A stretch of 62,036 nucleotides of DNA, counting the filler, from Choristocarpus tenellus KU-1152 (taxonomy: Eukaryota > Protista > Phaeophyceae): the NCBI GenBank assembly GCA_964200185.2. It is 10 parts of 10 records of this genome, joined end to end, with 100 filler letters (N's around TTAATTAATTAA, not from the genome) between each part and the next. Parts side by side here need not be neighbours in the genome. Positions count along the whole stretch, not along the records: positions 41,564 to 59,372 come from CAXNAD020000627.1; 9 more parts are not named here. One strand, given 5' to 3'. Within the stretch, counting starts at the first letter, position 1; every line of letters starts with the position of its first letter. The notes beneath the pieces were generated by a model, which made no database searches, had not been told where the DNA came from, and saw only the letters and a list, made by a program, of their open reading frames with translations. Below, piece after piece: positions 41,464 to 59,472 of the stretch. The translations under genes and the position numbers were made by a program.

Positions 41464-41593
41464 NNNNNNNNNNNNNNNNNNNNNNNNNNNNNNNNNNNNN
41501 NNNNNNNTTAATTAATTAANNNNNNNNNNNNNNNNNNNNNNNNNNNNNNNNNNNNNNNNNNNNCCCTCCCCACATCTGGAAGCTATCCCTTGC

Positions 41594-44500
41594 CTTGAGT
41601 ACATTGCCCGTTCCTGCATAGGCACAGGTGTCCAGCACCACCTGTGTATACTTCCCCATTCGGTGCTCAATCGTTTTCACAATCTGTCGGGTTTGGGTTG
41701 AGGTTGGGGTTAGAAAAGGAGGACAAAAAACTATTTTCAATGTCTTAGAGAGAAATTTAATAACAATTGACACCAGCTAACACCTACCACAGTATGCTGT
41801 AACTTGTCAGGGTATAATTGTGACTTTGGACCTGGGACACCTTCAAAATGCATTCAGAACACCAAGATCTATGCGCCTTGCCCTCTCCGTCCATAATATA
41901 TACTATTGTAGGGTAAACTGCAAACCCTAATCCTACTGCTACAACAGTTCCAGACCTCTTGGGGGAGAGTATAATGTACTACACCAACCCCAGATCTCTA
42001 GTTGAGACATATTACCTTGAGGCATTCAGATATATGACAAAACCTTCAAGATCGCCCCACAACATCCCTGGCTCATCCCCTCCACACTCCTCACCCTCAT
42101 TCCTATCATTTCCCCCCTTACCTCCATCATGGCATCAACTTTTTCGTTTTTCCCAAGGAAGAGTAGGCCCAGTCCCAGAGATACCAGACGGGTCATGTGT
42201 TGATCCAGTTCTGTGTCTGTACTCTCCATCAGCCTCTGCACAAGCACTGTGCCCACCCCTTCATTACATGTGCCCACAAAAATCATACCCAGCGATAGAG
42301 CTGCCAAGCCAACCTTAAGGGCAGTTTCAGTCAGGGAAGGGGGAGGTGTATGTGTGTAAGCAGCTTGTATCATATATCAACAATGCACAAACAAAAGCTG
42401 TTTCAACTTCTGTACCCAGAGTGTTGCCACTTTGACACGCTCAGTCCATCCAAGTTTCCTTCAGTCCACCCTCAGTGACACACCAATACACCAACACCCC
42501 TCCAGTTCCCCTCAACATACCTCAACCATGTTGGCATTCTCCGTATTAGCAACAAGTGGGGTCAACAGGTCCTCTACATCCTCCCTCCTTGCACCAGCGT
42601 AGGCAATACCCAGGCCAACACAAGCACCACATCGCATGGCGTGTGAAGGAGAATCCACATGGTCCGAAAGCAACGCCAGAGCAGGGTCACTCTCATTGCG
42701 GACACCACTGGAGGCCACACCAGATTTTGGTTTGCATTTGAGTGGAGGGGGTGTATGTTACTATGGGAATTGGTCTAATTGCAGGCTTCTGTTTTTCTCT
42801 TTTCAGGAAAGTTACTGAGCAATCCAGGAAAATCCAGGCTTCCCCTCAGAAGTCAGAGGTCATCTGAGCAGTGTGACACTAACAGTAAAATTGATTAAAC
42901 ACGTATGATTGTTAATAGTAGTATACTTGCATGTCCTACTCATACTATTGCACCAACAAACTACTTACAGCCCTACGAAGAATGCTGTTTCAGGCATTGC
43001 ACAGGTGTGTAGAGTTGGGGGAGGAGAGGGAATTGGGCACACTGTTGGCAAAAGAAGATATATATCATAGGATGACAAAGGGAGGGGGTCAGGGCAACAC
43101 TTATTAGTAGTATTGTTTTCCATGGGCAGGATTATCGCTAGGGTTGCTATTGCTCTATGGGGTTATACCCGAGAGCCAAAGGGTACAATAAGATGAGGGG
43201 GGTAATAAGGCAAAACATGGAGACAGAGGCACCTCCAGCAGGAGAAGCTATTGTAAGAGACTACTACTATTCTGAGGTTGTAACAAATGTACTCAGTGTG
43301 GCTCACGGACCTGCTGACAATCCCCACAGCAAGCACAGCCCCTGCCTTGATGTAATCCTCACTGGAGTACAGGAACTTATCAATCTGTACAAAAAAAACA
43401 GGAATAATAGGAAATACAGTACATGAGACACGTATCAGTTGAACAACACATACGAAAGGAAAACACACACAAACACAAACACACACACATATACACATGT
43501 GCACATGCAACAAGGATTTCAATGCTACGTGCCAGGTTGGGACAGGCAGTACACAAAGCCAGCTATGAGCCACAATTTTTCATGACTATCACGGCAAGCC
43601 ATAGCTGACAGCATTTCGTGTTTGCTGTTGTTTGCATCATGTGGAATAATGGGAATGCTGCTATGGGTTCTACCAACTTCTTGCAGGGGGGGGGAAGAGA
43701 GGGTGGGGGAGGAGGAAGGCACCTGTTGAATCTCTCCTCAGCATGTGTCAAAGTGAGGGCATTGTGATGCATGTGCCAGATTGGGTGAAGAAAAAGCACT
43801 CACGCTACACAACAAATACTCTTTTCTTCCTTGCCTGTGTGAGTCCCTCCTCCACATTCCACAGGAGGATGGTCCCCAGAGATGCAGCAGCACTCATCAT
43901 CCCGTGGTCCTTGTTCTTGTACAGCCATGCATTCCCCTCAGTTGTCATCAACTGAGGTGAGAGGGGGCATGCCAATGCAACACAAGACATATATTCAAAC
44001 ATCAGGAGAGGGATGGAGAGGGCAGGAAACGGGAATGTTTGTGAGGATTGCAATCCCATCGAAGCAATGGTATGGTGGACACAGCTTCTGCTCAACAAAA
44101 CTTTGGAAACACAAGACTTTTGATCAGCTTAGACCAAGCAGCAAATACACACCCCTTCCCACAAACATATTAGCCGCCAGCACCTGTACCCTTTAGTAGC
44201 AGTGGCCTCGAGTTCAATATTAACCTCACCTGGTCCTGCCCATAGCCGGCATTGACAAATGCATTAACAAAGGTCGATGCCAAGTTAGCCCGTGCTGAGT
44301 CCACCTGCTGTCCCCCCAAATCTCTCCTACGGGAGAAGCCCCCAGACTCTGCCAGATGACTCTTGTAGATGTCCTCAGGTGTCTGGTATTGACAAGGCGA
44401 ATGTTTGAAGAGAGCATCACATGTTGTAGCAGACAAGGTTTTCTACAATCCCATTCGGATAGTCTGTGGCACAAGTTGTAATTGGACTTGGACACTGAGT

Positions 44501-47500
44501 TAGGCTGATGTTATCGATCCTGTAGAAATGTGATTCCCTTCAAGGACAATCAACAACAATCATATCAGAGTCAGCAAGATTGTCTCAGAGTAACTTCAAA
44601 TCATGCCATGAAAACAAAAGACGAATCTCTTCTGTCCCCCCCCTCCTTCCAGCTATATATTTCCACAAGACATCCCAACCCTCCCAGTCTCACTCACTTT
44701 TGCCTCCATAACATCAAGGTCCCGCGCCAATGCGAGGTAATTTTCACTCAGTGACCCATTCCCAATTATTTCATTGATGTCGTCATCATCTGGGTGCTCA
44801 TAGGAAGACTTGTGCCTTGCCATTATGAGCCTTCCATACCAAAACAAGGGAACAGTCAAATCAAAAACACTGATTGAAGAGCACTTCCTAATGAATGTGG
44901 TCTTTCACATGAAAAAAACAACAACGATATTGCAAATATTATGAAGGATGGAATGGTATAACCAAGTGGGAGACTTTAAATCAATCGAACAAGACATAGG
45001 AGATAATCACTGAGGTGGATTGCAGTGAGTTCTGTTCTGAGAGAAAGGGGCCTCCTCCCAAAACAAGGTGCCTACTAATATAGGGAGGAACAGGTAATGT
45101 GAACATGCATATGCAAAAGACAGAACTCCCCCCCCCCCACACCAACCTCTCCAATCGGATCACTGCCTATTTTTACTGGGATATTATATCAACATCACCC
45201 ATTCCACTACAGTAGTCAGATCACATCTATATCACAACTAGGACAGACAAATACATGTTTAGTATTTATATCTGTAAAGAGGTGGTAGCAGTAAGGTAAG
45301 CTCAAGAAAATGACAGCAGAACAAGAGGATAGGTGGGATGGGCATACAACAGCCACAAGGAGAAAGACAAGAACTTTGTGCTCCGTATTGAAGGAATCTA
45401 TGATTACAGTTACATCACCTATATATACATAAATATATATATATATATAAATATATATATAATTGTTCTGATTGAACTGTAATGCAGTGCAGGCGCACAG
45501 GGCAATGCCTGTGTAAGGCATGCAGGTTGACGAGTGGGTAGCACAGCGAGGAAAAATACTTCCCCGATTTGAATGGAGCCTCTCCAGAGGCGTGTTATCC
45601 TATAGTGTTTGAGATGGACCGTTCCATTCCTTCAATTGGCTCACAATACTGCATACAAACACCCGCATTACAAGAATTATCTCTCACTTATAATTAAAAA
45701 GTACACGACCTTGTGACCTTCTCGCTTGTTATCACTAAAGAAAAAAAAAAGTTTCCAGTCGAACAATTTTAATTCGTCTATTCAAATCAATCGGACTTAA
45801 GCCCGTTGGACTGTCGTGATTCACAAAAAGAAATGTAGTAGAATCTCATGGGTGTGGGGGAGGAGGGGCAGCAAGGACTCACCCCATCTGCTGACGAGTT
45901 AATAGGTCTTCGCATTCGTTGAGGAGCTGCCCAAGCCTGTCTGGGTCATCCATCCTCAATGCAACCCGGACTGCATCACAAGGCTTGTCCTGCTTGCGGT
46001 AGAGTTCAAATGCACTCCTAAGCATCTCCTGCAGTTGGGGGGGAAGGGGCATTGTCTTGTGTGACACATAGAGTGGGGTGGTGAAGGTGGTTTTGGTTGA
46101 AGGCCATGACATGGCATTAAAAAAAAAATTAAAGCATGAGGTACTGTAGTGAGCTGGGTGCATTACAATCAATTCTTTTGAGAGAGGTCACCATTTTTAC
46201 AGTGATTTGCCTAGACTCTAATGTTCCTACCGAAATTATTGTCTGAAAGTGTTCAAAGCACAGGTCAGGCTAATACTTATACCACCACTTGCAGAATAAC
46301 TCCTTTACAACAAGTCACCTATATAGATATATATATATATATGGAGCAGGAAAATACCAATATCGATACCGCCTAACCCTAAGTCGCAAACCAAGAAGTG
46401 GAAATAATATAGAAACACCCCACTTCACTCAAGTCACAATAGGGAGGCATATACCAGCTGTACAAGCTGTGAAGTACTATGTATGAAACAAAAAAAAAGG
46501 GGCTGCAATCACATAGCACACACAAAGAGTAGCCACATATATTTAGTATCAGTCATAGACATACAAAGGACAAAATTCTCAACCCACCTGCCGCCACTTT
46601 ATACAAAGCAGAGGGGGCTGGGGTGGGGGTCAGAGAGGCAGACACCATAAAATGACATATTGTGACCAAAGTGTACTGATTCAACTCCTCCCCCTCAATT
46701 CCATCACTCACTGCCAAGTCGTCTGGATCAGACATATAGTCCGCCATCCTCAGCAAGTACAGGCACACACGCTCATAATTCTTCTCATCGACATGTGGGG
46801 ATTCCAGTATCTTGTTCAGGCGCTGCACAGATACGAGTTGCATATCCATGTATAACCATTTAGAAAGGGCAAGGTGAGATCAACAAAAGGCTAAGCTTAT
46901 TGCATGAGGGGTTAGCAAATTGTGGAAATGAGGCAAACGTTATGTTTGCACCACATGATAGCTAGCTTCAGGAATCTTCCTATTGGTAAGGGTGGGAAGG
47001 GGTAAGAAGAGGAGAGCAACCCTTGAGAGTGACTGTATAGATAAACCTCCATTCAAAATCCTAAGTAAACACCACTCACAGTGCACTTTTCCATTGTTTC
47101 AGTTGATGTCCACTGTGCATTACTCCTCCCAAATGCACAACAACAATTCAATAACTGCAAACAACTGTTTCCAATGGGGTGAGTAAAAGTTACAAGACTA
47201 AAAAAAAACTTTTTCGCTGAACAATGCCAGAGTATTGGAAATTTCCTAATAAACTTCCCACTCAGGTGCTTGACCGGAGACAATTTGCCCAATGAGTCAA
47301 AAAGTCTAAACATAGGTGTGATCAGGACAGGAAGGAGCACCAGATACTCTCTGTGCCACTATTCCCTCATCCTAATCTACTCTTTTTTCTCCTTCAAAAC
47401 AGACAGTTGAAGAAACAAGACTCCCCATAAGAGCATCACGTCACATCCTCTTGTGTACTAGCTTGTGAGGTGAAAAAACAAAAACGTACACAACCACACT

Positions 47501-50500
47501 ATTTTGCTACCACTCTCTGGCATCCAATCATAGGACATGCCTCAATGTTGCTTGCGTTTGCTTCATTACTCAACCATTTCATCTAAAAGCCTAGCTGTCA
47601 CTAATTGCGTCTAACAAAAGATCCATCGCTTGTCTGTGCACCCCACATCAGTCCAGTCTAATTTCTGGATCTAATCCTTGTTGCAACTCTCTCCTCTGGG
47701 AGATATTGAGATTGTAGTTTCAATGCATCTCACAGAGACACATTCAGCTATATCTACCATACCTCTTTCCTGTCTGGTTTACTTCATTACTCTGTCACCT
47801 CTCAATACACAGGCTAAGGCGGATTTTTCACCTCATACATAGTATTTCATTACAAGAAATAACCCACCATAGCACAGTACATATTTAGCACAATCTAGGT
47901 TGTGTGAACAAATATCAGTGACACAACACTTCAAAGGTATAAATTATCCAGTCTAAGTACAAACTGTAAATGTGTGACCCCTGCGATGCAAATATAATGG
48001 ACTATAAGCCCCTCCCACCTACATCCAACTCAACACCCCCCTCCCTGTAGAGAGCTACACCATGCTGAGTATGTCAACCCCCAAATTGTATGCATGTTGC
48101 AACCATGGTGGGGTACTGCACGATCAGGTCTGAGTTCTACTCAGACCCAAAATGAATGCATGATCCTGATGAGCATGTCACCCACATGAGCAACTATCAG
48201 AAAAGGTCACAACACACCTAGCAGCCCAGCTGCAAATTCCAACCTCCCTTGTCAGAGTATGCTTGGAAGTACTGTACGCTATGATGAAGACCACAACATA
48301 ACCAACACCTTGGAGTACTTGATTTGTTCAGCTCAACGTTGCATCAGCAAGAATATGGCAATAATGCACACAACCACAGCAAGACCATGCACTTACATTA
48401 AAAAAAAAGCTAACCTCTCTCACACTTCTTTCTCCCCTACCCACCCTGTATCCTTTGTCTACTCAAACGCTTCTCTGCCCCTTGCATCCCAACCTGCGCT
48501 TGCCACAGGATACTTCCCAGTTCCCCACCATCCCCATTCCAGCCTCCACACATATACATGGGCCCCAATATCATCTCAACATTGCATGCTGGGTGAGAGT
48601 GTCCACTGTGACAACAATCACAACACTATAACAAATAATCCTATTGCAACGAGGTCCACCTAGCCCAAACACTCACATCTAACCTCACTACTGTGATTAT
48701 GGGTAGGGGTAAAGGGGAAGGCGGAGGGGGGCACAGTGCAAACAAAAAAAAGGAAATACTTCCACATGCCAACAAGAACACACCTGCACCTCCACCAAAA
48801 GATCAACAGCTTCTGCCTCTGCATTGTGCTGCAGGTGAAACGGCACAATATCATCCACAAGCTCCAACAGATCCGCTACATCCACCCCAGCATCAGTTTC
48901 CATCTCTGCCCCACCCTCTGTCACAATGCGCATCATCCGTGCTGTGTACTCCTGTCCAATCTCCCCTGCTAGGCTACGCAAGAACTCATGGCCCCATGTG
49001 CCAAGGTTGCCCTTCGTTCCTGCCAATTTGAAGCCCAGGCTTGCACGGCTTCCAGGCTCCGCCATCGTCATGGCAAGCACCTTCAAACAGCCGGTCATCA
49101 TAACATTAAAATGTGTTCATTTCATTTGGTGACTATTGAGTTTGAGTATGAGCATTCCAACATGTCCATTACCTGTGTGTGTCCAAGGAGTGTTCACGTG
49201 CAATTGGTTGAATCTAAGTCAGCAATTAGAATGGGCAGGAAGATGAGCCCATGGGAATGAATCACACCATTCATTTTAATTAACCTCATGATGGAAAAAC
49301 TTTGTGATGACAGAGATATGCAAATACAAAATGGTCATTTATGACTTGTTCTAGAGGACTCCAACACATCATCGATCAGAACACTGACTACCCTTCGTCC
49401 CCCCTTTATTCTGTAAGAGACTATGGGTTCAATGATTGTGTATTAAGTTTCTTGGCACAAATGATTGCACTTCTCAATGCTAAAGGGACTTCACGTTGTT
49501 GAGTTCTGGACATGAATAAAAAAAGAGACCTCCTTCCACGGCCTTGAAACCATTTTTTTTCTTCACTGTTGTCCTGCAATATCGACCTGTCTTGTCATTG
49601 TTACCTACAGTAAAAAAAGCAAGATAACTCAAGGAATTAAGCAATGTTTGGGGCAAACAAATACAGGAGTACGGAGCCATAAGCAAAGTCACATATGACA
49701 ATACCCCAAATCCATTACACAAGCATTGAAGTAAGCTGTAAGTACAACTGAAAAAATCATGCCATGGGTGGTACCCTGGGGCTGGCTGGAAGGGGGACAC
49801 ACACCGAAAGGATATCTGCCAAAGTTCGCTTGTTTCCAGACGCGGTGGCCATACCCTCTTCTTCTCCCTCCTTTGTAACTGTGGGGGGAGGCCCGGTGGC
49901 CTCGGGCCATTCATCATACACTGTTGGAGAGTGAAAGAAGGATTTAGTGAGGTGGGGGTAAATAAACCAGGCAACAGATTACAACATAAAACTACATCAC
50001 AACTCCTTGTAAACCACATCGTGGCTCCATCTCAACACACTCAACTACACACCATTCTATTAAACCTTTTCATGCCATGCCAATCCTACTATCTTCAGTC
50101 TGGAAAATGACATCTACCTTTCTTCAGTTGTGCATAGTGAGGTCGTAGGAACTTGAGTGGCTTTGGCACGCTCGTCATGCTGGTGGTTGCAGAACGAATC
50201 TCAGACGACAGGTGTTTCAATGCGTTTTGCACTGTGGATGTGATGATGCGGAAATGTGTTTTGTTGATGGACAGGCAGCAGGTGGGTTGGGAGTGGTTGG
50301 TTATTAAACGATAACTAAATTACAGTACAAGAAAGAAAGGTGTGTTGCATCAAGCAGGAAAACCTTTGTGTTGCCTTCTCTTCAAGCACATCACTGCTGC
50401 TGCCATGAAAATCAAGGCAGAGGATGGAGTTTCAGACATTCTCCTGGGATGAAGAATTCGAATTTCTTCATATACCCCATCCAATCTGCTATAGATCGAT

Positions 50501-50990
50501 GCAATAGCCCCCTATAACAAGAATACTTGCATTGCATATCAGTTCACAAGTTATGAGCTGAGTTGGTGCTCTGCCAAAGAACACAGTCAACCTGCAACAA
50601 GAGTAACCACGTTACACCAAACTACATTGGATGCATCTTAACAGATTATAACCCAAGCACACATCCCCAAGCCTCCAATCTCTCACAAGCCCCACTCCCA
50701 CCAGTCCAGTGTTGCCCACGTAACCTACCAATGCCATGTTCTGGGTCCTCCACTCGTGCGACCGCGAGTTCCAGTCCTTCCTTCAGGGCCTTATCCTCCT
50801 CGCTAAGTTCTTCTTCCTCCACCCCAGGGTTACCATCCTTGCCGACCCCCTTCTTAGGGCCACCCTTTGCACCAGAGTCTTTCTCGGAGGCATTACCCTT
50901 ATCATCCCCAAGTGCTGGATCCTTGCCAGCAGGGTCCTTGGACGGGACCTTGATAGATACTGCCTTTTTGTCATCTCCTGAATCCGGCAT
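41594..50990 (-). CDS. RPN1: 26S proteasome regulatory subunit Rpn1/PSMD2 (3' partial); exons 50990-50729, 50231-50118, 49920-49805, 49080-48784, 46822-46712, 46028-45883, 44830-44698, 44382-44230, 43951-43835, 43384-43311, 42707-42521, 42313-42122, 41683-41594
   Basis: [115 protein letters not shown]; all phases consistent. Confidence 0.97.
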
Positions 50991-51229: not shown

Positions 51230-53400
51230 TTTCAGCTCTATGCTTAAGCTCGCAACCAGATTATTAAGGATAACTTCTGTACCAAGGTCCTCAGGTATCT
51301 ATCAGGGGTGGACTAGAAAGACTCGGTGAACGACGCCCCAGTTTGCAAGTGCACTTGACCATTCATAAAGTATACGTCACAGTCTACAGGTCCTCTGTAC
51401 GTAGATAGTCCGTAGCAATGTTGCAATCGATGAGTAAAAAAACGGACTACTTACTTAGAGAAGTCTGCACGGGGCGAGTGAGGGTAGTCCAAAAGCTCCA
51501 GGAAGAGTTGTGATCATCCATACTTTCCAAAGGATTGATCACCCCGCCAAGACAAGCGCTACCAGAGACAACAAATTGTATACATCTACGTCAAACAACT
51601 TGTTCGAGTGAAGTATCTAGGTCCGTGTCGCCTACCTTGGCTGAACCTCGCGTTGACAACAACCAGCCCCAACGGTCCCTAAATGGACCCTACTTCGCCA
51701 CGCTGATGTGTTTTTTCTTCTCACCTATATGTCAACGCGACCTAGCTATGCAGGGTAGAGCACAGTTACTAAGATAACTTCTTTCTCTCTGAAGGCTTGC
51801 CAGTTTCCACCTTTTCCTACGTGAAGCCTGAAGAACACAGACCATGTTAAGGAAAACGCCAACATTGTGCAAAACCTTTTCTTTATTTAGCACCTCGTTC
51901 GTATAGTGGAGAAACAAAGTACATCTATCCACCCACACCCACAATTGCTACATCTATTCCTTGTAGCTGGTTGACTTTGATGAATCCTGCGTAACTTACT
52001 TTCCATAATTGGTGGTGATGGTTAAGGTGCCATAGGAACAATTACTTGGCACGTTCCATCATGAAAGGTGTGCTGAACGAACCTTTACCACTGAAAGATG
52101 ACCACGTAGGCGTGTCCTCTACTAGCCATCGAAGGCAGGTTTACCAGAGGCTGCTACTACAGTGGAAGGATGCGGCATCATCGTCGTTGTGGTCAAATCC
52201 GGCGCCCAGGTCATCGCATGCTAGGTTCTTGGTGATGGAGGTGGGAGATGTCGGTTGTAGGTGTCAAGTCCGTGTCGCTTTTTCAATTTATCCCTGAGTG
52301 GCATCTTCTCTGATGGCACCGCAGCATGTGTGACTAGCCCATCTTCTATAATTTAGCTCTGGTGTTGCTTACCCTCCCCACCTTAGAATTTCCTCGAGAT
52401 ACGTACAAAATGTACTAGTTGTGTTACTGGTTACTGCCTGTCATAGGGAGGCTGTGCTTGCGCTTCGTTTCCTGGCGCCGCAACTAAATTGTGGTGTTGT
52501 TTATGCCCTTTTATTCACACTACAAAGAACGGTGTACTTAGAGTGAGAGAGAACTGAGGGTAGATCTTCTGAAGGTAGGGATTGAAAATAGACTTCACTG
52601 AAACCATTCCATGTCAAGATGTACAGGTACGTTCTCGTCATCCATGTTCAAGGTAGATTTATAATTGCCTCGCTCAAATATTGTTTAGACACTCTGTACA
52701 CTCTGAAAAACACAAGTAAAGTAAAACAGCATGCCTTGGTTTCAACCTACTCGAATTGAGGACTGGCTGGCTTCGTTGTGATGGGCCGGGCATAGGGACT
52801 TTTCGATGCATTGTTTTGGACTAAACCTTGCCCAAATCTGAACCTACACATCTGTATTGGTTGGACAGCGTAGGGAACTTCTTCGAACCAAGGATACAGC
52901 ACAACCTTCACATGCTCGCTCTTCATCATGGGGCAACCTTTCGGCATGCCAAAGTGATACCATCTCTCCAAAGGCACAGTCGGCGTGGTTGGCAGTGCTC
53001 CTCCAACGGCACGAGTATCGACTGTCCAGCATCCCATTGGTGAGCTCTTGTGAACTGAACTGGAGTGCAACTGGAGTTTTTGTATGCAATCCAAGTTGTC
53101 GGTAAGGTGGAGCGTTTCTTGAAGGACATGATAGGTTTGTGGTTGACATCACACTCTGCTGTTGCTGCGATGACCAAGTACCTCTGGATATGTGATTAGA
53201 AATTTCATCTCCCAGTACCAAATGGTGGGGGTGATACACTAATGCTTCACTGGCCCTGGGCTTTCTCGACCTCTGAGGGGGGTGGTTCAAGCATTTAGTT
53301 GTCGATTCAATTTCATTATCTGAGAGGAGTTCCGTGCAACCTTCTGATGCACCCTCATCAGGGCTGCAATGCAAACAGTTTTAGGACTCATTCTATTCCA
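51230..53400 (-). CDS. Possible hypothetical multi-exon gene, divergent from the ODC-like gene
   Basis: Protein-like open segments at 53374-53180 and 53070-52750 (RWYHFGMPKGCPMMKSEHVKVVLYPWFEEVPY) with plausible splice sites; I could not build a fully phase-consistent chain. Confidence 0.3.
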
Positions 53401-53708
53401 CCATCAACAGCGTCACCTGTCCATACCTTCCTCAAACCTACGGTCCACCAACAATGACAGGATTTGAAGTGTCTTCGCTGGACCTCCAAACTGCTTCAGT
53501 GAACAATCCACACAGTATTTTTCTCCGTCTTGAAATATCATAAGTAACAAAATGTCTGCAAGTAGCTATAGAACAGAACGGCAGGATGAAATGGTACAAG
53601 TAAGATATCCCACTCGATACAACTTTTTCTCAGACCAACCAAAGTTTCCTTTGATGCAATGCCTCACTTTCTGCTTGCGAAAAGTCGATCCTGGAGAAGA
53701 ATCAAAAC

Positions 53709-56700
53709 ATGCTAGCTGCTGGAGCCCGGGTTGTTGCCGCCCCTACCAGCTTGACTGCAAAGCAGATTGCGCTGTTGGCAGTTCGAGGCAAGTGTGTTGA
53801 GGTGACTGCTTTGCAGAAGTTCGCCCCAAATGAAACAGCACTTGTCAGGCCACCCCCTTCCACTTCGGTGGACAGGTCATCGGCAATGGAGGCGCCATTG
53901 AGTGCTAGAGAGCGGTCGCAGGACACACTTTTAGGTAACACATCCTCGCAGGGAGAGGTTAATGGAAGATCGGCGAGGAAAGTGGTTTACAATTCAAGGG
54001 GATTATCTATGGTAAAGAGTATGGGGCCTCTGAAACGGGGGTTTCAACTGGTGGACTTACATGCTGTGGTGCAGAATTATGTTCAGTGGAGACATTGCCT
54101 CCCCAAGGTGTGACCTGTTTCATGTCTCTCCAAGAGGGTGGTAGTATTAATGTGGGTAGTTTGCAGGAAGTGGGTAACTACGATTTTCTCAACTGTAGCA
54201 GGTGCTGCTACATACTCATCTTGTACCCCAGAGAACAAACATCAGCAACCGACAGGTGTTGACATACCATTTTCCCACCTCATCCCAATTGTCAATGTAC
54301 TTGGCCTTGACATTCCTACAATATATGCTACTCCGCGTGTTCTTCTGTTCCTCCTAAGTAGCTATACACTTATGACCGCATGTGAGGGTGGGTAGATGTT
54401 TTATGTAGAATTTGCCTCAATTGCTTTGAAACTGCACAGCCTAGCCAACCAAATCTAGCAAATATGGTTTGAGTAGTGGGTTGGCTCCAATGATATGTCA
54501 ATTTAACTGAACTGTGATTGTTGGGGGAGGGGGGGTGAGGGTCTTGCTGGGTTCCAAGCAGCTTGTTGGTCATTTGAATTATGTGCTGTGTCCAGTAATT
54601 GCCTGGTTAGAACAATGTAAGGCATTTCGTGGAGCAGTATTCTCTACATGAGGCAGTTTGGGAATGAAATGTGATGAGGAGATGGTGACTATGCTAAACC
54701 ATGGCGCGTTGAATTTGCAGCACTGCACAGTGCTTTGAAGCCACTCAACGAACAGGAAGAGAGAGCACCGCAGATCCAACGAACAGAAGTTACTGACATG
54801 AAACGGTTTTCTCGTTGTTCCAAGCTCATTTCAGTTCACCTTGAAACCGGCCAATAGCCAAATTTAACATGATCGAAGCAGAATCTCATCACTATGTTCG
54901 TTTTGCATCTTACGTATAAATCTGATTTAACCCTCTACGTTTTTCACAACTTATTGGACTCAACTGTATGTTGTGTTTTGTATGCAAATGTCCTCCTCCA
55001 GGTGGAGGCATGCTTCCGGGTGGGGGATAACCGAGATGCTGTTCTCCTGAGCCTTGTCTCGGCGCTAGGTGTTCGTCTCATATGCTCTACCGCTCTTGAT
55101 GTAAAGGTGGCAAGGGTGGCAGCGACTTTGGTGCCTGCAGATAAAATTGACCGCCATCCCCTGGTGCCACTGCGACTTCTTGACTCTAACCTATGTCGGC
55201 CACCAGCCTTGCTCCACACTGGAGCAGAGGCTGGAATGCCAATCTATGAGGTGGGTTGGTAATATGAGGTTCTCAGATCTCCTGGTCTTTTACCACCGCT
55301 TCTTCCCTTGCCTCTCCGCCCCCTCACTTTTCATACCAGCATTTTGGCTTGATCCTTCCCTTGGTACATTGTGCGGAAAGGGTGAACAAAGTGAGATGGT
55401 CACTTTGGTCCTTTACCTCAAGTGTTGCCCATTCTTTGTCCTCCATGACAATTGCGTATCGTTCCTCCATGCCGTAGAGAATAACTTGCATGCTCTGTTT
55501 AATGTTTTTACTACATGACTGTACCCCCCCCCACACACAGTACAAGCAATATACTTGTCCTTCGTGCATACTTCAAGGTACTTGATTGTACCATCTATAT
55601 ACTACATGTTTATGTGCTCATGCATAGAAATGAATATACAAACTAGTATATCCTCACCACTCCCATGTAGTTCCTTTATGGTACAAAATTGGTGACATGT
55701 ACACTATAGAGTTCTCCTTCTCTGCTATTGCCCTGAATTGCCTGTCACCCCTGCCTTGCCCACACCTAATGCAGGTAGACAGTGCAGAGGAAGTGCTCAG
55801 GATATTGTCCACTCTTAATGGGGAAGGTTCCAGTCGTGGGCAATGCACAGCCAATCTGCAAGACTGTGACAGTTTTGAAAACGAAGACCGTTCTGCCTTG
55901 GATGATAGAGATTGCCATCGTAGCAATGCTCATCCTACTGGCTCAGGAAGATTGTGTCATTCAGGAAGTAGCTCTGCCATGGTGACTCCCATTGAGGTAC
56001 TGATAAGGTTGACTCTTCCACCACAAGCTCATGTGAAGCGTGTTGATTTGTCAGAGACTAGGGCGAGGAAAGAAGGGTGCCTAGAAGGAGGGGAGAAGGA
56101 TAGCTTTCCTGGAATGGAAGCTACCTTGACATCACAGGGATTGGCTTTCCCAGTGGAGGTAGAGCATGGAGCAGAACTAGAGGATATCGTCTCCATCCTG
56201 GAGGCAACGGCAACTGCTTCAGCAAAGGCATGTATGTCTGGCACCAGTAGGGGTATTGGTTGTGGTTACAGGAGAAAGAGGAGTTTCACAGTTGTAGGGT
56301 TTTCACTTGACCTGGGTATGGTCTGCCGTGCTGCCTCCACAGTGGCCTCTTGCTCACATGAACCAAGTCTGACTCCAGGGCTGGCATCAGATTCAGGATT
56401 GCCAGATACACCTACTGGTCGTGAGAGAGAAGGGGAGGACTGTGTCCTCAATGCCAATATGGAGACGGCGGTGTCATATGTGCTTGAGGCTGCGCAACGA
56501 GCAACAGCATGGATGGCATCGAGAGGAGAAGCTGCTTCCAAGGTTAAGAATGTGGAAACAGGTAGCAGTTTCAGCAGTTTTGGTGACAGCAAAGATGAGG
56601 TCACTAGTGCATCGCCAGCACAAAGAGGGGTTTTCCATTTCCGTCGGCTCCATGTACTGGGACTGGGGACAGGGGGTGCCTGCAGGGAGCCCTTATCGGC

Positions 56701-57460
56701 ACTGAAAGCGGCCCTTGCCCGTCTTGGTCCCGACGTGAGGCCTTCTGTATCAGCGGATGCCACTGAGTACCTAGTCGCTGGTGGAGTGTGCTCACTGGCC
56801 GCGTCTATAATTGGGAAGAAGGTCCCTCATGTTGCCCAAGGCACCACAAGGGATACAAAGCCGACTGCTATTGGGCTTAAAGAGATTACAAGTAACACTG
56901 TTGCTGCACCTGAGTCAGCAGCGTTGGATTCCATGGAGAGAGTGGAAGGGGCAATAGCAGGGTCGGAGATTGAGGCTAGAGAGAATGTGGAGCCCTCTCC
57001 CCTAGGTAGTATGTATTATATAGATGATGGCTGCTACGGATCCCTGAGTGGGGCAGCCCTCCGTGGTGAGGAGATGCAGCCACGCCCACTGTTTTCTCAG
57101 CACACATATGCTGAATGGGACAAGGCAACGTGCACTCTTCCAACTTCATCTACTACTGTGTCTTCATCGTTTTCCAGTCTTGCTTTCAATCCTTCTCTTG
57201 CCAGTTCCTCGGACACCATCCCTGCTCTTTCTTTGACTTCCCTGGTGCCATGTACCGTATGGGGCCCCACCTGCGATGGACTTGATTGTGTGTCAAGGGT
57301 GACAACTCTCCCGGTGGACCTAGAGTCAGGAGTGGACTGGCTCTTTTTTGCAGACATAGCTCTGAGGACAGCAGCAGATGCCACATGTTTCAACGGGCTA
57401 GAGCCTCCTGATATCCTTTACTGCCTCCGACAGCAAGATTGGCATTGTGCACCTCAGTAG
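53709..57460 (+). CDS. Ornithine decarboxylase homologue (fold-type III), predicted catalytically incomplete; 777 aa; exons 53709-54107, 55002-55250, 55775-57460
   Basis: FQLVDLHAVVQNYVQWRHCLPKVEACFRVGDN (ODC FYVADL..W...LPRVTPFYAVKCN), NLCRP (NPCK), VDSAEE, YYIDDGCYGSL, VWGPTCDGLD, DWLFF, FNG; two phase-0 GT-AG introns; frame intact. Confidence 0.9.
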
Positions 57461-59472
57461 GAGAAGGGTAGAAAGTGAAGTATTGTTTATGCAGTAATAG
57501 TAGCTCCTGTAGCTCCTAGTTGATATGTATGTGGGAGAATGTTTTCGTAATGGTCAATAGTGTTTTATATTTATATTTTAATTAGTAGCATAGATTATAG
57601 CAGTAGTCTGAGTGGGTCCCGGAGCCATGGTGGAAAGGTAGTGTGAAGAAAATGCAATCTAGTTGAGAGATGCAATTAGAAAGGAGAAATAATCCTGTCT
57701 ATCTATGAAGGGAACAACAAGAACCCAGGCGAGTACATTTAATAGATACTTGGGATAGGACGTCATCATCAGACTTGTTACATTGTGGGTAGAAAGAGTT
57801 GATTCGTTCCTGCTGTGGGTCAATTCTCAATTTTTCGATTAACTTAGAAATCTTGAAAGAGGTATTGGAAAGCTTGGGAAATCACCCTGGTCTTGGGGAA
57901 CCAACGCTGTCACACTTTTTTGACACACAAGTTTAGGGTTAGAGGTTTTCGAAAATGTGTATGAAAAAGTGATTAGTGGTGAAACCTTGAGAAGTGCGGT
58001 GGTTCCCCAGTGCAAGCTATACTGCTGCACCACTTCTTTTACAGTGTTTCCCTGGTTGGTTAGGGATATTTTCACATGTTTAGGGTTGGGGATAGGGTTA
58101 GGTTTCAAAAATGCGTCCAAAACAAGTGAAAAAATATTACAGTTGTGGGTCTAGAAGACGGGCGTTCCCTTGTGCACTGGACTACAGCATAAGGTTCTTC
58201 AAATATCCAATTAACTAGCTTATTTTTATCACCCAAACAGGTGTTAGGGAAGCATTTTGGCTGCTTGCAAACTCATTTCTTGCGTTCCTTATAAACCACA
58301 GACTTGCCCATGGATGGCATCTTTTCCCCTGAGAATATTCGTGGCATGAAAAGTGTTTGATCTTTTTTATGTTAAACGACAGAGCCCCTAGCAGCATCCG
58401 TCCCTTATGTCATATTTGCGGGTTATATATATTGTAACCAATCATACACCATGTATGCAGTGACAAGCTGACTGGACCCCTGCATAGTAACACCACTATA
58501 ATAATGATAGTACTAAGAATAATACAATACTAATGATAATGATAATACAATAAAATCATAAAAACAATAATAACAATGAAACAAAATTAACAAGAGTCTC
58601 AGTAGTCTCAGCCACAACACAAGTAGCCCTATCTAGATGTGTCACACGTTTTAAGCTGGAGACACCTGGGAGATTGGCAACGAGGGGCTTCTTAGATTCT
58701 TGGGATGCTTCCCTAGCTCATCACCCTGGGGTGTAGGACTAAGCTAGGTTGGAGGCACAGGAAGGCAGCGGTGCAGCATAGCTGGTAGTAAAATAGAAAA
58801 TAGATTAATAACTTTCACATATATGACAACTGTTACTTTTTTAGGGGGTTTTCTGGCATGTGAATAATTTTCATTGGTTTTTCCCCGAAGCATCTGGAAA
58901 ATGTCAAAGGCATAATAATATACTAACAATAATAACAAAAATAATAACAATAACACAATAACAATGATAATAATTTAGGTTATTGGGAAGGGTCACTCCC
59001 CCCCACCTTGCACACTCCACCATGGAGCAAGCAGACAATACCTCACTATGGACGCTAGAGAAGATAATGGGGGCAGCAGACTCGGTGGGATCCACTGACT
59101 TCTTTGAAGGGGGATGTGGCAATCGGTGTCTTTCCCTGGATACTTACCAACAGAGTTTAGACTCACTGCCAGCAGATCCTTAGGGAGGGAGGAGACCTTA
59201 TCTAACAAGCACTCGGTGGCTGGGTGCAGGAGGCAAAAATATTGATACAAGGCACGCACATACCTGGCCTAGGGCAGGAAGATAGGTTCGCCAACACGTT
59301 ACAGCACGCTCCAGGAGCTTACCTCTACAGGATGTATAGCTCCCATCTACGGGCCTATAGATGATACTGATGNNNNNNNNNNNNNNNNNNNNNNNNNNNN
59401 NNNNNNNNNNNNNNNNTTAATTAATTAANNNNNNNNNNNNNNNNNNNNNNNNNNNNNNNNNNNNNNNNNNNN

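Follow-up and report, generated by a model that had tools for sequence, protein, structure and literature searches.

Ornithine decarboxylase (ODC) is obligately dimeric, and its two active sites are shared between the subunits, with Lys69 and the contacts to pyridoxal 5'-phosphate (PLP) coming from one subunit and Cys360 from the other. A protein that has lost one half of such a site and kept the other raises the question of what it can still do in the cell. We addressed this question for an ODC-like gene of the brown alga Choristocarpus tenellus KU-1152 (GenBank assembly GCA_964200185.2), which lies on record CAXNAD020000627.1 within a window of 62,036 nucleotides, filler included, made of ten parts of ten records joined end to end; all coordinates without a locus name count along this window. 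The gene corresponds to CAM9204699.1 at NCBI, a protein of 902 aa that is entered as an 'unnamed protein product'. Our analysis indicates that it is an expressed, conserved and, judging by its sequence, catalytically dead ODC paralogue, showing the purifying selection expected of a prozyme-type protein.

The initial annotation had aligned the protein by eye to mammalian ODC and reported the loss of K69, D88, H197, R277, Y389 and, apparently, D332, together with the retention of Y323, C360/D361 and F397/N398. All of these assignments held in a MAFFT alignment of 142 rows, comprising about 120 family members and 22 canonical ODCs, in which the Choristocarpus protein carried the changes K69→G, D88→I, E94→D, H197→D, S200→M, E274→D, R277→E, D332→R and Y389→R and kept Y323, C360, D361, D364, F397 and N398. 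The position of the Schiff-base lysine falls in FRVGDN, which the family profile placed on YAVKCN of the Trypanosoma brucei ODC, with the glycine codon at 55023–55025; an alignment artefact at this position was ruled out, as two independent alignments and the alignment of the hidden Markov model to the PDB sequence concurred. Exon 4 also contains LICST, where D88 is replaced by Ile and E94 by Asp, and the part of the barrel encoded by exon 5 reads FSLDLG around H197→D and SADATE in place of AEPGRY. Two of the earlier readings had to be adjusted. The phosphate loop DIGGG, read as VLGLG, is indeed degenerate (RRLHVLGLGTGG, with L-G-gap at positions 235–237), but its register is ambiguous by one residue, MAFFT placing LDIGGG on LHVLGL; E274, reported as lost, is changed to Asp, but the change is conservative and the Asp recurs in 114 of 120 family rows.

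The retained motifs lie on the plus strand at positions computed from the translation: YIDDGCYGS at 57017–57043, WGPTCDGLD at 57260–57286 and FNG at 57389–57397. On the basis of the T. brucei and mammalian structures, we take D332 and Y389 to be residues that serve the subunit's own site and Y323, D361, F397 and N398 to be donated to the partner. The Choristocarpus protein kept 2/13 own-subunit residues as compared with 5/5 partner-donated ones (Fisher p = 0.0025).

The asymmetry claimed for this one protein was found across the approximately 120 relatives. At positions of the own-subunit set, the canonical residue was present in 4/90 rows for K69, 0/89 for D88, 2/120 for H197, 0/119 for G235, 9/120 for R277, 2/86 for D332 and 0/78 for Y389, whereas Y323, C360, D364, F397 and N398 were canonical in all 120 rows and D361 in 119 of them. 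For the ligands of the PLP ring and phosphate (D88, H197, S200, G235–237, E274, R277 and Y389), identity within the family was 0–16%, with the exception of G236. In nine brown algae the K69 column held G, C or S, most of the other members had Q, M, T, R, S or H there, and no alternative conserved lysine was present among the conserved columns of the family. The predicted loss of PLP was thus borne out at the level of sequence, a Schiff base at position 69 being impossible and the phosphate-binding residues being gone; because it has neither a Schiff-base lysine nor a PLP-phosphate site, the protein alone would not be a PLP-dependent decarboxylase. At the dimer interface, K169, which in ODC forms a salt bridge to D364 of the other subunit, was lost, the family's own D364 was invariant, and the interface residue G387 was kept alongside it.

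A few members departed from this pattern. The sole change of D361 was seen in a brown-algal sequence that reads WGPTCCGLD (P0023, L001:10001–11293, on a 576-kb contig of an ENA assembly). Four members of a diatom-type subclade (P0040, P0100, P0118 and P0121) had a lysine in the K69 column (YSTKHN) and lacked D88 and H197, and two of the four passed the precomputed Pfam match for the PLP domain; this lysine is either a vestige or due to chance.

The relationship to ODC was visible both in sequence profiles and in the predicted structure. The C-terminal sheet domain passed in Pfam (PF00278, 8e-10), while the PLP-binding barrel domain (PF02784) scored 16.4 bits against a cut-off of 23.4. A phmmer search of PDB sequences with the single protein found ODCs, the best being that of T. 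brucei (4.5e-11), through the last 60 residues; with the family profile the match rose to 1.4e-24, with an N-terminal block on residues 39–97 of the T. brucei ODC, and antizyme inhibitor AZIN1 was also matched (4ZGZ, 4.9e-21). AlphaFold2, run on residues 225–902 as a single chain with an alignment of 85 rows, predicted the whole ODC fold with four disordered inserts (pTM 0.76, core pLDDT >90). When this model was used in Foldseek, the human and T. brucei ODCs were the best matches (E down to 5e-20, TM by target 0.71–0.83) and the top matches were all ODC or viral arginine decarboxylase, which places the model in the two-domain fold of ornithine, diaminopimelate and arginine decarboxylases, an alanine-racemase-like barrel followed by a beta-sheet domain; a search of the ESM Atlas returned generic fold-III clusters only. 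Ahead of the ODC-like part stands an N-terminal extension of about 230 residues with two near-invariant tryptophans, Trp35 (present in 64/67 family rows) and Trp81, for which AlphaFold2 predicted a confident long helix at 94–128 (pLDDT about 88–90); the extension gave no match in Pfam.

Word searches recovered about 30 brown-algal sequences, of which those of Sphacelaria and Discosporangium were named, the rest being mostly contigs with the last exon only. Chrysoparadoxa australica also carries a member, and the named ones among about 90 further family proteins are from diatoms (Chaetoceros, Odontella, Seminavis, Nitzschia, Ditylum and Dactyliosolen). The gene had been proposed to represent a stramenopile system, and the family is accordingly present in brown algae, Chrysoparadoxa and diatoms, nearly all members carrying PF00278 only. 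Eight other brown-algal loci, compared exon by exon rather than as joined gene models, had exon edges equal to those of Choristocarpus. Ratios of non-synonymous to synonymous substitution rates (dN/dS, Nei–Gojobori), computed pairwise among three closely related species, were 0.23–0.45 for the dead barrel exon and 0.32–0.43 for the last exon, and the pattern of loss and retention that the initial annotation had asked of orthologues was seen in relatives from all three groups. In trees from a quick search, which were unrooted, had long branches and sampled 22–31 canonical ODCs and no bona fide vertebrate AZIN, a branch with full support (100*) separated the family from the canonical ODCs, that of Nannochloropsis included. 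The brown-algal clade had a support of 97–99, with Chrysoparadoxa as its sister in the larger tree (support 85), and 87 diatom-type rows formed a separate clade within the family. These data fit a single origin before the split of the diatoms and the brown-algal lineage.

What, then, might a protein of this kind do? The reading that we favour, although we hold it with slightly less than even confidence, is that it is a PLP-dead subunit that acts through dimerization, most plausibly by lending its intact half-site to a true ODC. A non-catalytic partner is favoured because the observed pattern is the one expected of a subunit that completes the site of another and never uses its own. The protein would act as a dimer subunit through this half-site, its likeliest partner being a catalytically competent ODC; in the mixed dimer, one live site would be formed by the Lys69/PLP side of the ODC and the Cys360 loop of the family member, and the second site would be dead. 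The loss of K169 together with an invariant D364 fits a one-sided interface of this type. Pairing of this kind could let the dead subunit determine how much ODC activity there is, how stable it is, where it is located or how it is regulated, and the N-terminal extension and the long disordered inserts would carry the regulation. That a site can be completed across subunits is known from ODC itself, as mixing of K69 and C360 mutant subunits restores one active site (PMC5574924). A broader version, which we consider improbable, would have putrescine synthesis in ochrophytes depend on an obligate or regulated ODC heterodimer, with an ancient half-site donor whose acidic pocket senses polyamines, so that feedback would run through a dead paralogue and not through antizyme.

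Several observations weigh against a half-site donor. Its weak point is the partner, a K69-intact ODC in Choristocarpus or other brown algae being hypothetical. A word search with the canonical ODC P0082 gave no named brown alga among the best 120 of 7424 matches, few of which had organism names, and a representative search with the Nannochloropsis ODC gave no identifiable brown-algal ODC among the 150 matches listed, which carried few or no names. In addition, the former cofactor pocket appears not to be drifting freely but to have been rebuilt around newly conserved residues, for which a donor of the other half-site has no need. Position 94 held D or E in 90/90 rows (E94→D); at position 197 Asp was found in 88/120 rows, Glu in 9 and Asn in 9; G235→T was present in 104/119 rows and G276→S/T in 120/120, beside the conserved E274→D, and R154 was kept as R or K in 106/118. 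In brown algae, Arg was fixed at position 332 (30/30) and position 389 (28/30). On the partner-donated side, Cys322, which lies beside Tyr323, was found in 120/120 family rows, as compared with V, I or M in ODC, and the residues invariant only in this family (Cys322, Leu326, Asp319, Thr355 and Thr395) hint at a function unlike that of a normal ODC half-site. Tyr323 and Phe397 are interface residues as well, and part of their conservation could therefore serve dimerization alone. Finally, resemblance is no guarantee of pairing, since the mouse ODC-related protein (ODCrp), in which all critical residues are present, forms no heterodimer with ODC (PMC5518511).

A canonical ODC was present in Nannochloropsis, and the relatives identified in cluster look-ups came from Picozoa, Cymbomonas and Nannochloropsis only. 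Six further sequences (P0197, P0203, P0211, P0213, P0234 and P0238) grouped in one clade of canonical ODCs that retain K69; they are 560–600 aa long and have a long Ala-rich insert right before WGPTCDS(I/M)DK, the place at which the dead family also has an insert, and they may represent the canonical ODC of diatoms or of some other ochrophytes. Polyamines are essential, and in diatoms they also make up the long-chain polyamines by which the silica cell wall is shaped. The diatom Thalassiosira pseudonana has been treated with an ODC inhibitor, presumably difluoromethylornithine (DFMO). Silica formation is lowered by the inhibitor in this species (PMC3476827; PMC6356823), and two 'ODC' genes are listed for Phaeodactylum tricornutum in a review (PMC6356823).

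The rebuilt pocket would be accounted for if the protein were a ligand-binding protein or enzyme that works as a homodimer and without PLP, in which the remodelled acidic pocket and the Cys360 loop of the other subunit together bind, for example, a di- or polyamine. Such a homodimer may serve as a sensor or regulator, or may have acquired a new chemistry through Cys322 and Cys360. A pocket remodelled to a conserved set and not degraded favours this explanation over a pure donor, as do the arginines fixed at 332 and 389 in brown algae and the family-only Cys322 next to Tyr323; an acidic and aromatic pocket would suit amine ligands, and a homodimer is possible because the interface residues D364, G387, Y323 and F397 are kept. 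However, the loss of K169 would weaken a symmetric interface of the ODC type, and the original chemistry is the simplest explanation for the exact retention of C360/D361 from diatoms to brown algae. We regard the homodimer as the main rival and a serious one, though less likely than the half-site donor.

Two regulatory roles that need no completed active site are improbable in our view, and to a similar degree. In the first, the protein would be an independently evolved antizyme inhibitor, that is, a decoy that spares ODC from degradation by having the higher affinity for an antizyme-like inhibitor. It would resemble vertebrate AZIN in being an inactive ODC paralogue, consistent with the match of the family profile to AZIN1, and a role of this kind has been repeatedly proposed for inactive ODC homologues, according to the passages of PMC5518511 and PMC5574924 that cite Ivanov et al. 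(2010); the neighbouring gene for a proteasome subunit, described below, is a curiosity only. Nevertheless, a decoy does not need an invariant Cys360, Asp361 and Asn398, and the stretch of ODC that binds antizyme (117–140) was not recognizably kept when judged by eye. Moreover, a survey of 2007 placed protist antizymes in cryptomonads, jakobids and one glaucophyte and named no stramenopile (PMC1874602), and a very broad literature search combining antizyme and stramenopiles returned no relevant paper.

In the second, the protein would be a dominant-negative inhibitor that pairs with ODC monomers and lowers their activity or stability. The idea has been published for inactive ODC paralogues (PMC5574924); the interface residues needed for it are kept, and the long disordered inserts could hold degradation or regulatory signals. 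On the other hand, a pure inhibitor has no need of an invariant Cys360/Asp361 or of the substrate-side Phe397/Asn398, and a mixed dimer with these residues intact leaves each ODC subunit one working site.

That the protein alone remains an active decarboxylase by means of a different lysine or cofactor is very unlikely. In its favour are the complete fold, an acidic residue at position 274 and the lysine in the K69 column of four diatom-type members, but this column is not Lys in nine brown algae and in most other members, no other lysine is conserved in its stead, the phosphate ligands S200, G237, R277 and Y389 and the ring-stacking H197 are all gone, and the Pfam PLP-binding domain falls under its cut-off. 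Finally, a decaying pseudogene or a gene-prediction artefact, to which a very divergent barrel, long low-complexity inserts and one partly retained intron might point, was ruled out by the RNA, the conservation and the dN/dS, given an open frame of five exons that is spliced in RNA, orthologues with equal exon edges in eight other brown-algal loci, invariant motifs common to diatoms and a dN/dS of 0.23–0.45, and we assign it next to no probability.

The gene model had initially been drawn from 53709 to 57460, but position 53709 lies inside exon 3, and RNA and conservation place the start at 52061, with two further exons upstream. The open reading frame at 55697–57460 had 99% identity to CAM9204699.1, and when this protein was mapped back by tblastn it gave a gene of five exons at 52061–57460 on the plus strand, on which all features of the gene given here lie. 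Exon 1 (52061..52240, aa 1–60) begins with the annotated start codon, is supported by tblastn and the end of an RNA contig, and encodes the motif RVY..L...W of the N-terminal extension, which includes Trp35 and is conserved in loci L001, L002 and L006. Exon 2 (52869..53039, aa 61–117), in which the predicted long helix starts, encodes the motif SSWG...ISP.AQSAW..LL.R...RL..IP with Trp81, conserved in L001, L002, L006, L007, L008, P0052 and P0068. Exon 3 (53685..54107, aa 118–258) covers a disordered linker and the first barrel strand, RGFQLVDLHAVVQNYVQWRHCLPK, which corresponds to ODC residues 39–62; its segment RGFHLVDLHAVVRN is conserved among the brown-algal loci. Exon 4 (55002..55250, aa 259–341) encodes the part of the dead barrel with FRVGDN and LICST, and exon 5 (55775..57460, aa 342–902 and the stop codon) encodes the remaining barrel and the C-terminal sheet domain, with the four long disordered inserts. 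The 3' untranslated region (UTR) extends from 57461 to at least 58400, the RNA contig continuing from exon 5 at equal depth.

The RNA evidence came from contigs of one public C. tenellus run, the kind of which is unrecorded and the contigs of which are spliced. Spliced contigs joined 53039 to 53685 and 55250 to 55775, both with GT..AG borders, and a loose contig end was equal to 52211–52238, giving the junction of 52240 with 52869, also GT..AG; three of the four introns were thereby confirmed. For intron 3 (54108..55001, GT..AG), we infer the junction of 54107 with 55002 from its borders, from contig breaks at 54110 and 55000 and from the equal exon edges in the eight other brown algae. The frame and splice sites had been described as intact, and this stood for the open frame and for the three introns spanned by spliced contigs, the fourth junction being the inferred one. 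An unspliced contig (54081–55029) covered intron 3 at a depth of 46, as compared with 125–160 on the exons (about one-third), and the other introns were nearly empty of RNA coverage. If intron 3 is retained, the frame ends at a TGA at 54111–54113, ahead of the ODC-like domains; the coverage could be regulated intron retention or mere pre-mRNA.

Within the 3' UTR, short stretches at 57943–57982 and 58104–58143 recurred on other C. tenellus contigs (loose ends, DNA runs) and are therefore probably small dispersed repeats, and a length difference of one base was seen at 58123 in two runs. Upstream, on the minus strand (41564–50990), lies a gene for the 26S proteasome subunit RPN1/PSMD2, several exon reading frames of which matched the Pfam domains RPN1_RPN2_N and PC_rep; it runs past the edge of the piece, and roughly 1 kb separates it, head-to-head, from the start codon of the ODC-like gene. 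Since RPN1 also lies upstream in the brown-algal loci L002 and L007, the arrangement is conserved. A fragment of an RVT_2 reverse transcriptase upstream of another orthologue (L008:2040–2399) is an ordinary retrotransposon remnant.

The position of this family among known proteins is set first by ODC itself. We know of no described control of ODC in stramenopiles and of no antizyme reported there, and a conserved dead ODC paralogue is a concrete candidate for such control in two ecologically dominant algal groups. As compared with eukaryotic ODC (EC 4.1.1.17; T. brucei 1F3T/1NJJ, human 7S3G), which is a PLP decarboxylase of fold type III, the family has the same two-domain fold, PF00278, D364 and G387 and identical YxxDGxYGS, WGPTCDGLD and FNG motifs; it differs in lacking K69, D88, H197, the Gly-rich phosphate loop, R277, D332 and Y389, and adds the N-terminal extension, the four disordered inserts and the invariant Cys322 and Leu326. 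Several members are labelled at source with names such as 'ornithine decarboxylase' or 'diaminopimelate decarboxylase', which could inflate ODC counts in reconstructions of algal pathways. Our literature search found no paper connecting a dead ODC with stramenopiles, with diatoms or with brown algae, and none describing the family.

Like the family, vertebrate AZIN1 and AZIN2 are ODC paralogues without decarboxylase activity, and they regulate polyamine synthesis. AZIN, however, binds antizyme, which is not known in stramenopiles, and its mechanism does not require the one-sided loss seen here. The ochrophyte family probably arose apart from AZIN, as suggested by its own clade, separate from all canonical ODCs sampled, in a tree that held no vertebrate AZIN. 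In trypanosomes, a dead paralogue of deoxyhypusine synthase contributes to a shared active site. Passages of PMC5201418 and PMC6221367 describe the trypanosomatid prozymes as dead paralogues that pair with a live enzyme of the polyamine pathway. The logic proposed here is the same as that of the prozymes of trypanosome S-adenosylmethionine decarboxylase and deoxyhypusine synthase, with the differences that folds and lineage are distinct and that the ochrophyte pairing is hypothetical; if true, it would extend regulation by dead paralogues beyond trypanosomes and animals.

The closest precedents are found among ODCs. In planarians, ODC5 (C360V) and ODC6 (K69S, with C360 kept) have been proposed to form a complementary heterodimer with one working site (PMC5574924), and inactive ODC homologues recur, a heterodimer role having been proposed for them by Ivanov, Firth and Atkins (2010), as cited in passages of PMC5518511 and PMC5574924. 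The novelty claimed in the initial annotation is accordingly lower than conceived, both ideas being already in print in those sources. The likeness lies in losses among the critical residues, 20 of which are listed in PMC5518511; paralogues of the ODC5/ODC6 type have one or few substitutions among 18–20 such residues, whereas in the ochrophyte family the whole set that serves the subunit's own site has been lost or remodelled, the partner-donated set is invariant, the divergence is deeper and an N-terminal extension is present. The ochrophyte family thus stands apart from the known cases by the completeness of its one-sided loss, its deep conservation, its remodelled pocket and its N-terminal extension. 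Laboratory K69A mutants of ODC, which are dead alone and complete a site with a C360 mutant, carry an engineered change at a single site; the ochrophyte protein follows the same residue logic, but it is natural and has lost all PLP contacts, and if it does lend its half-site to ODC it would be nature's counterpart of the classic experiment in which K69 and C360 mutant subunits are mixed.

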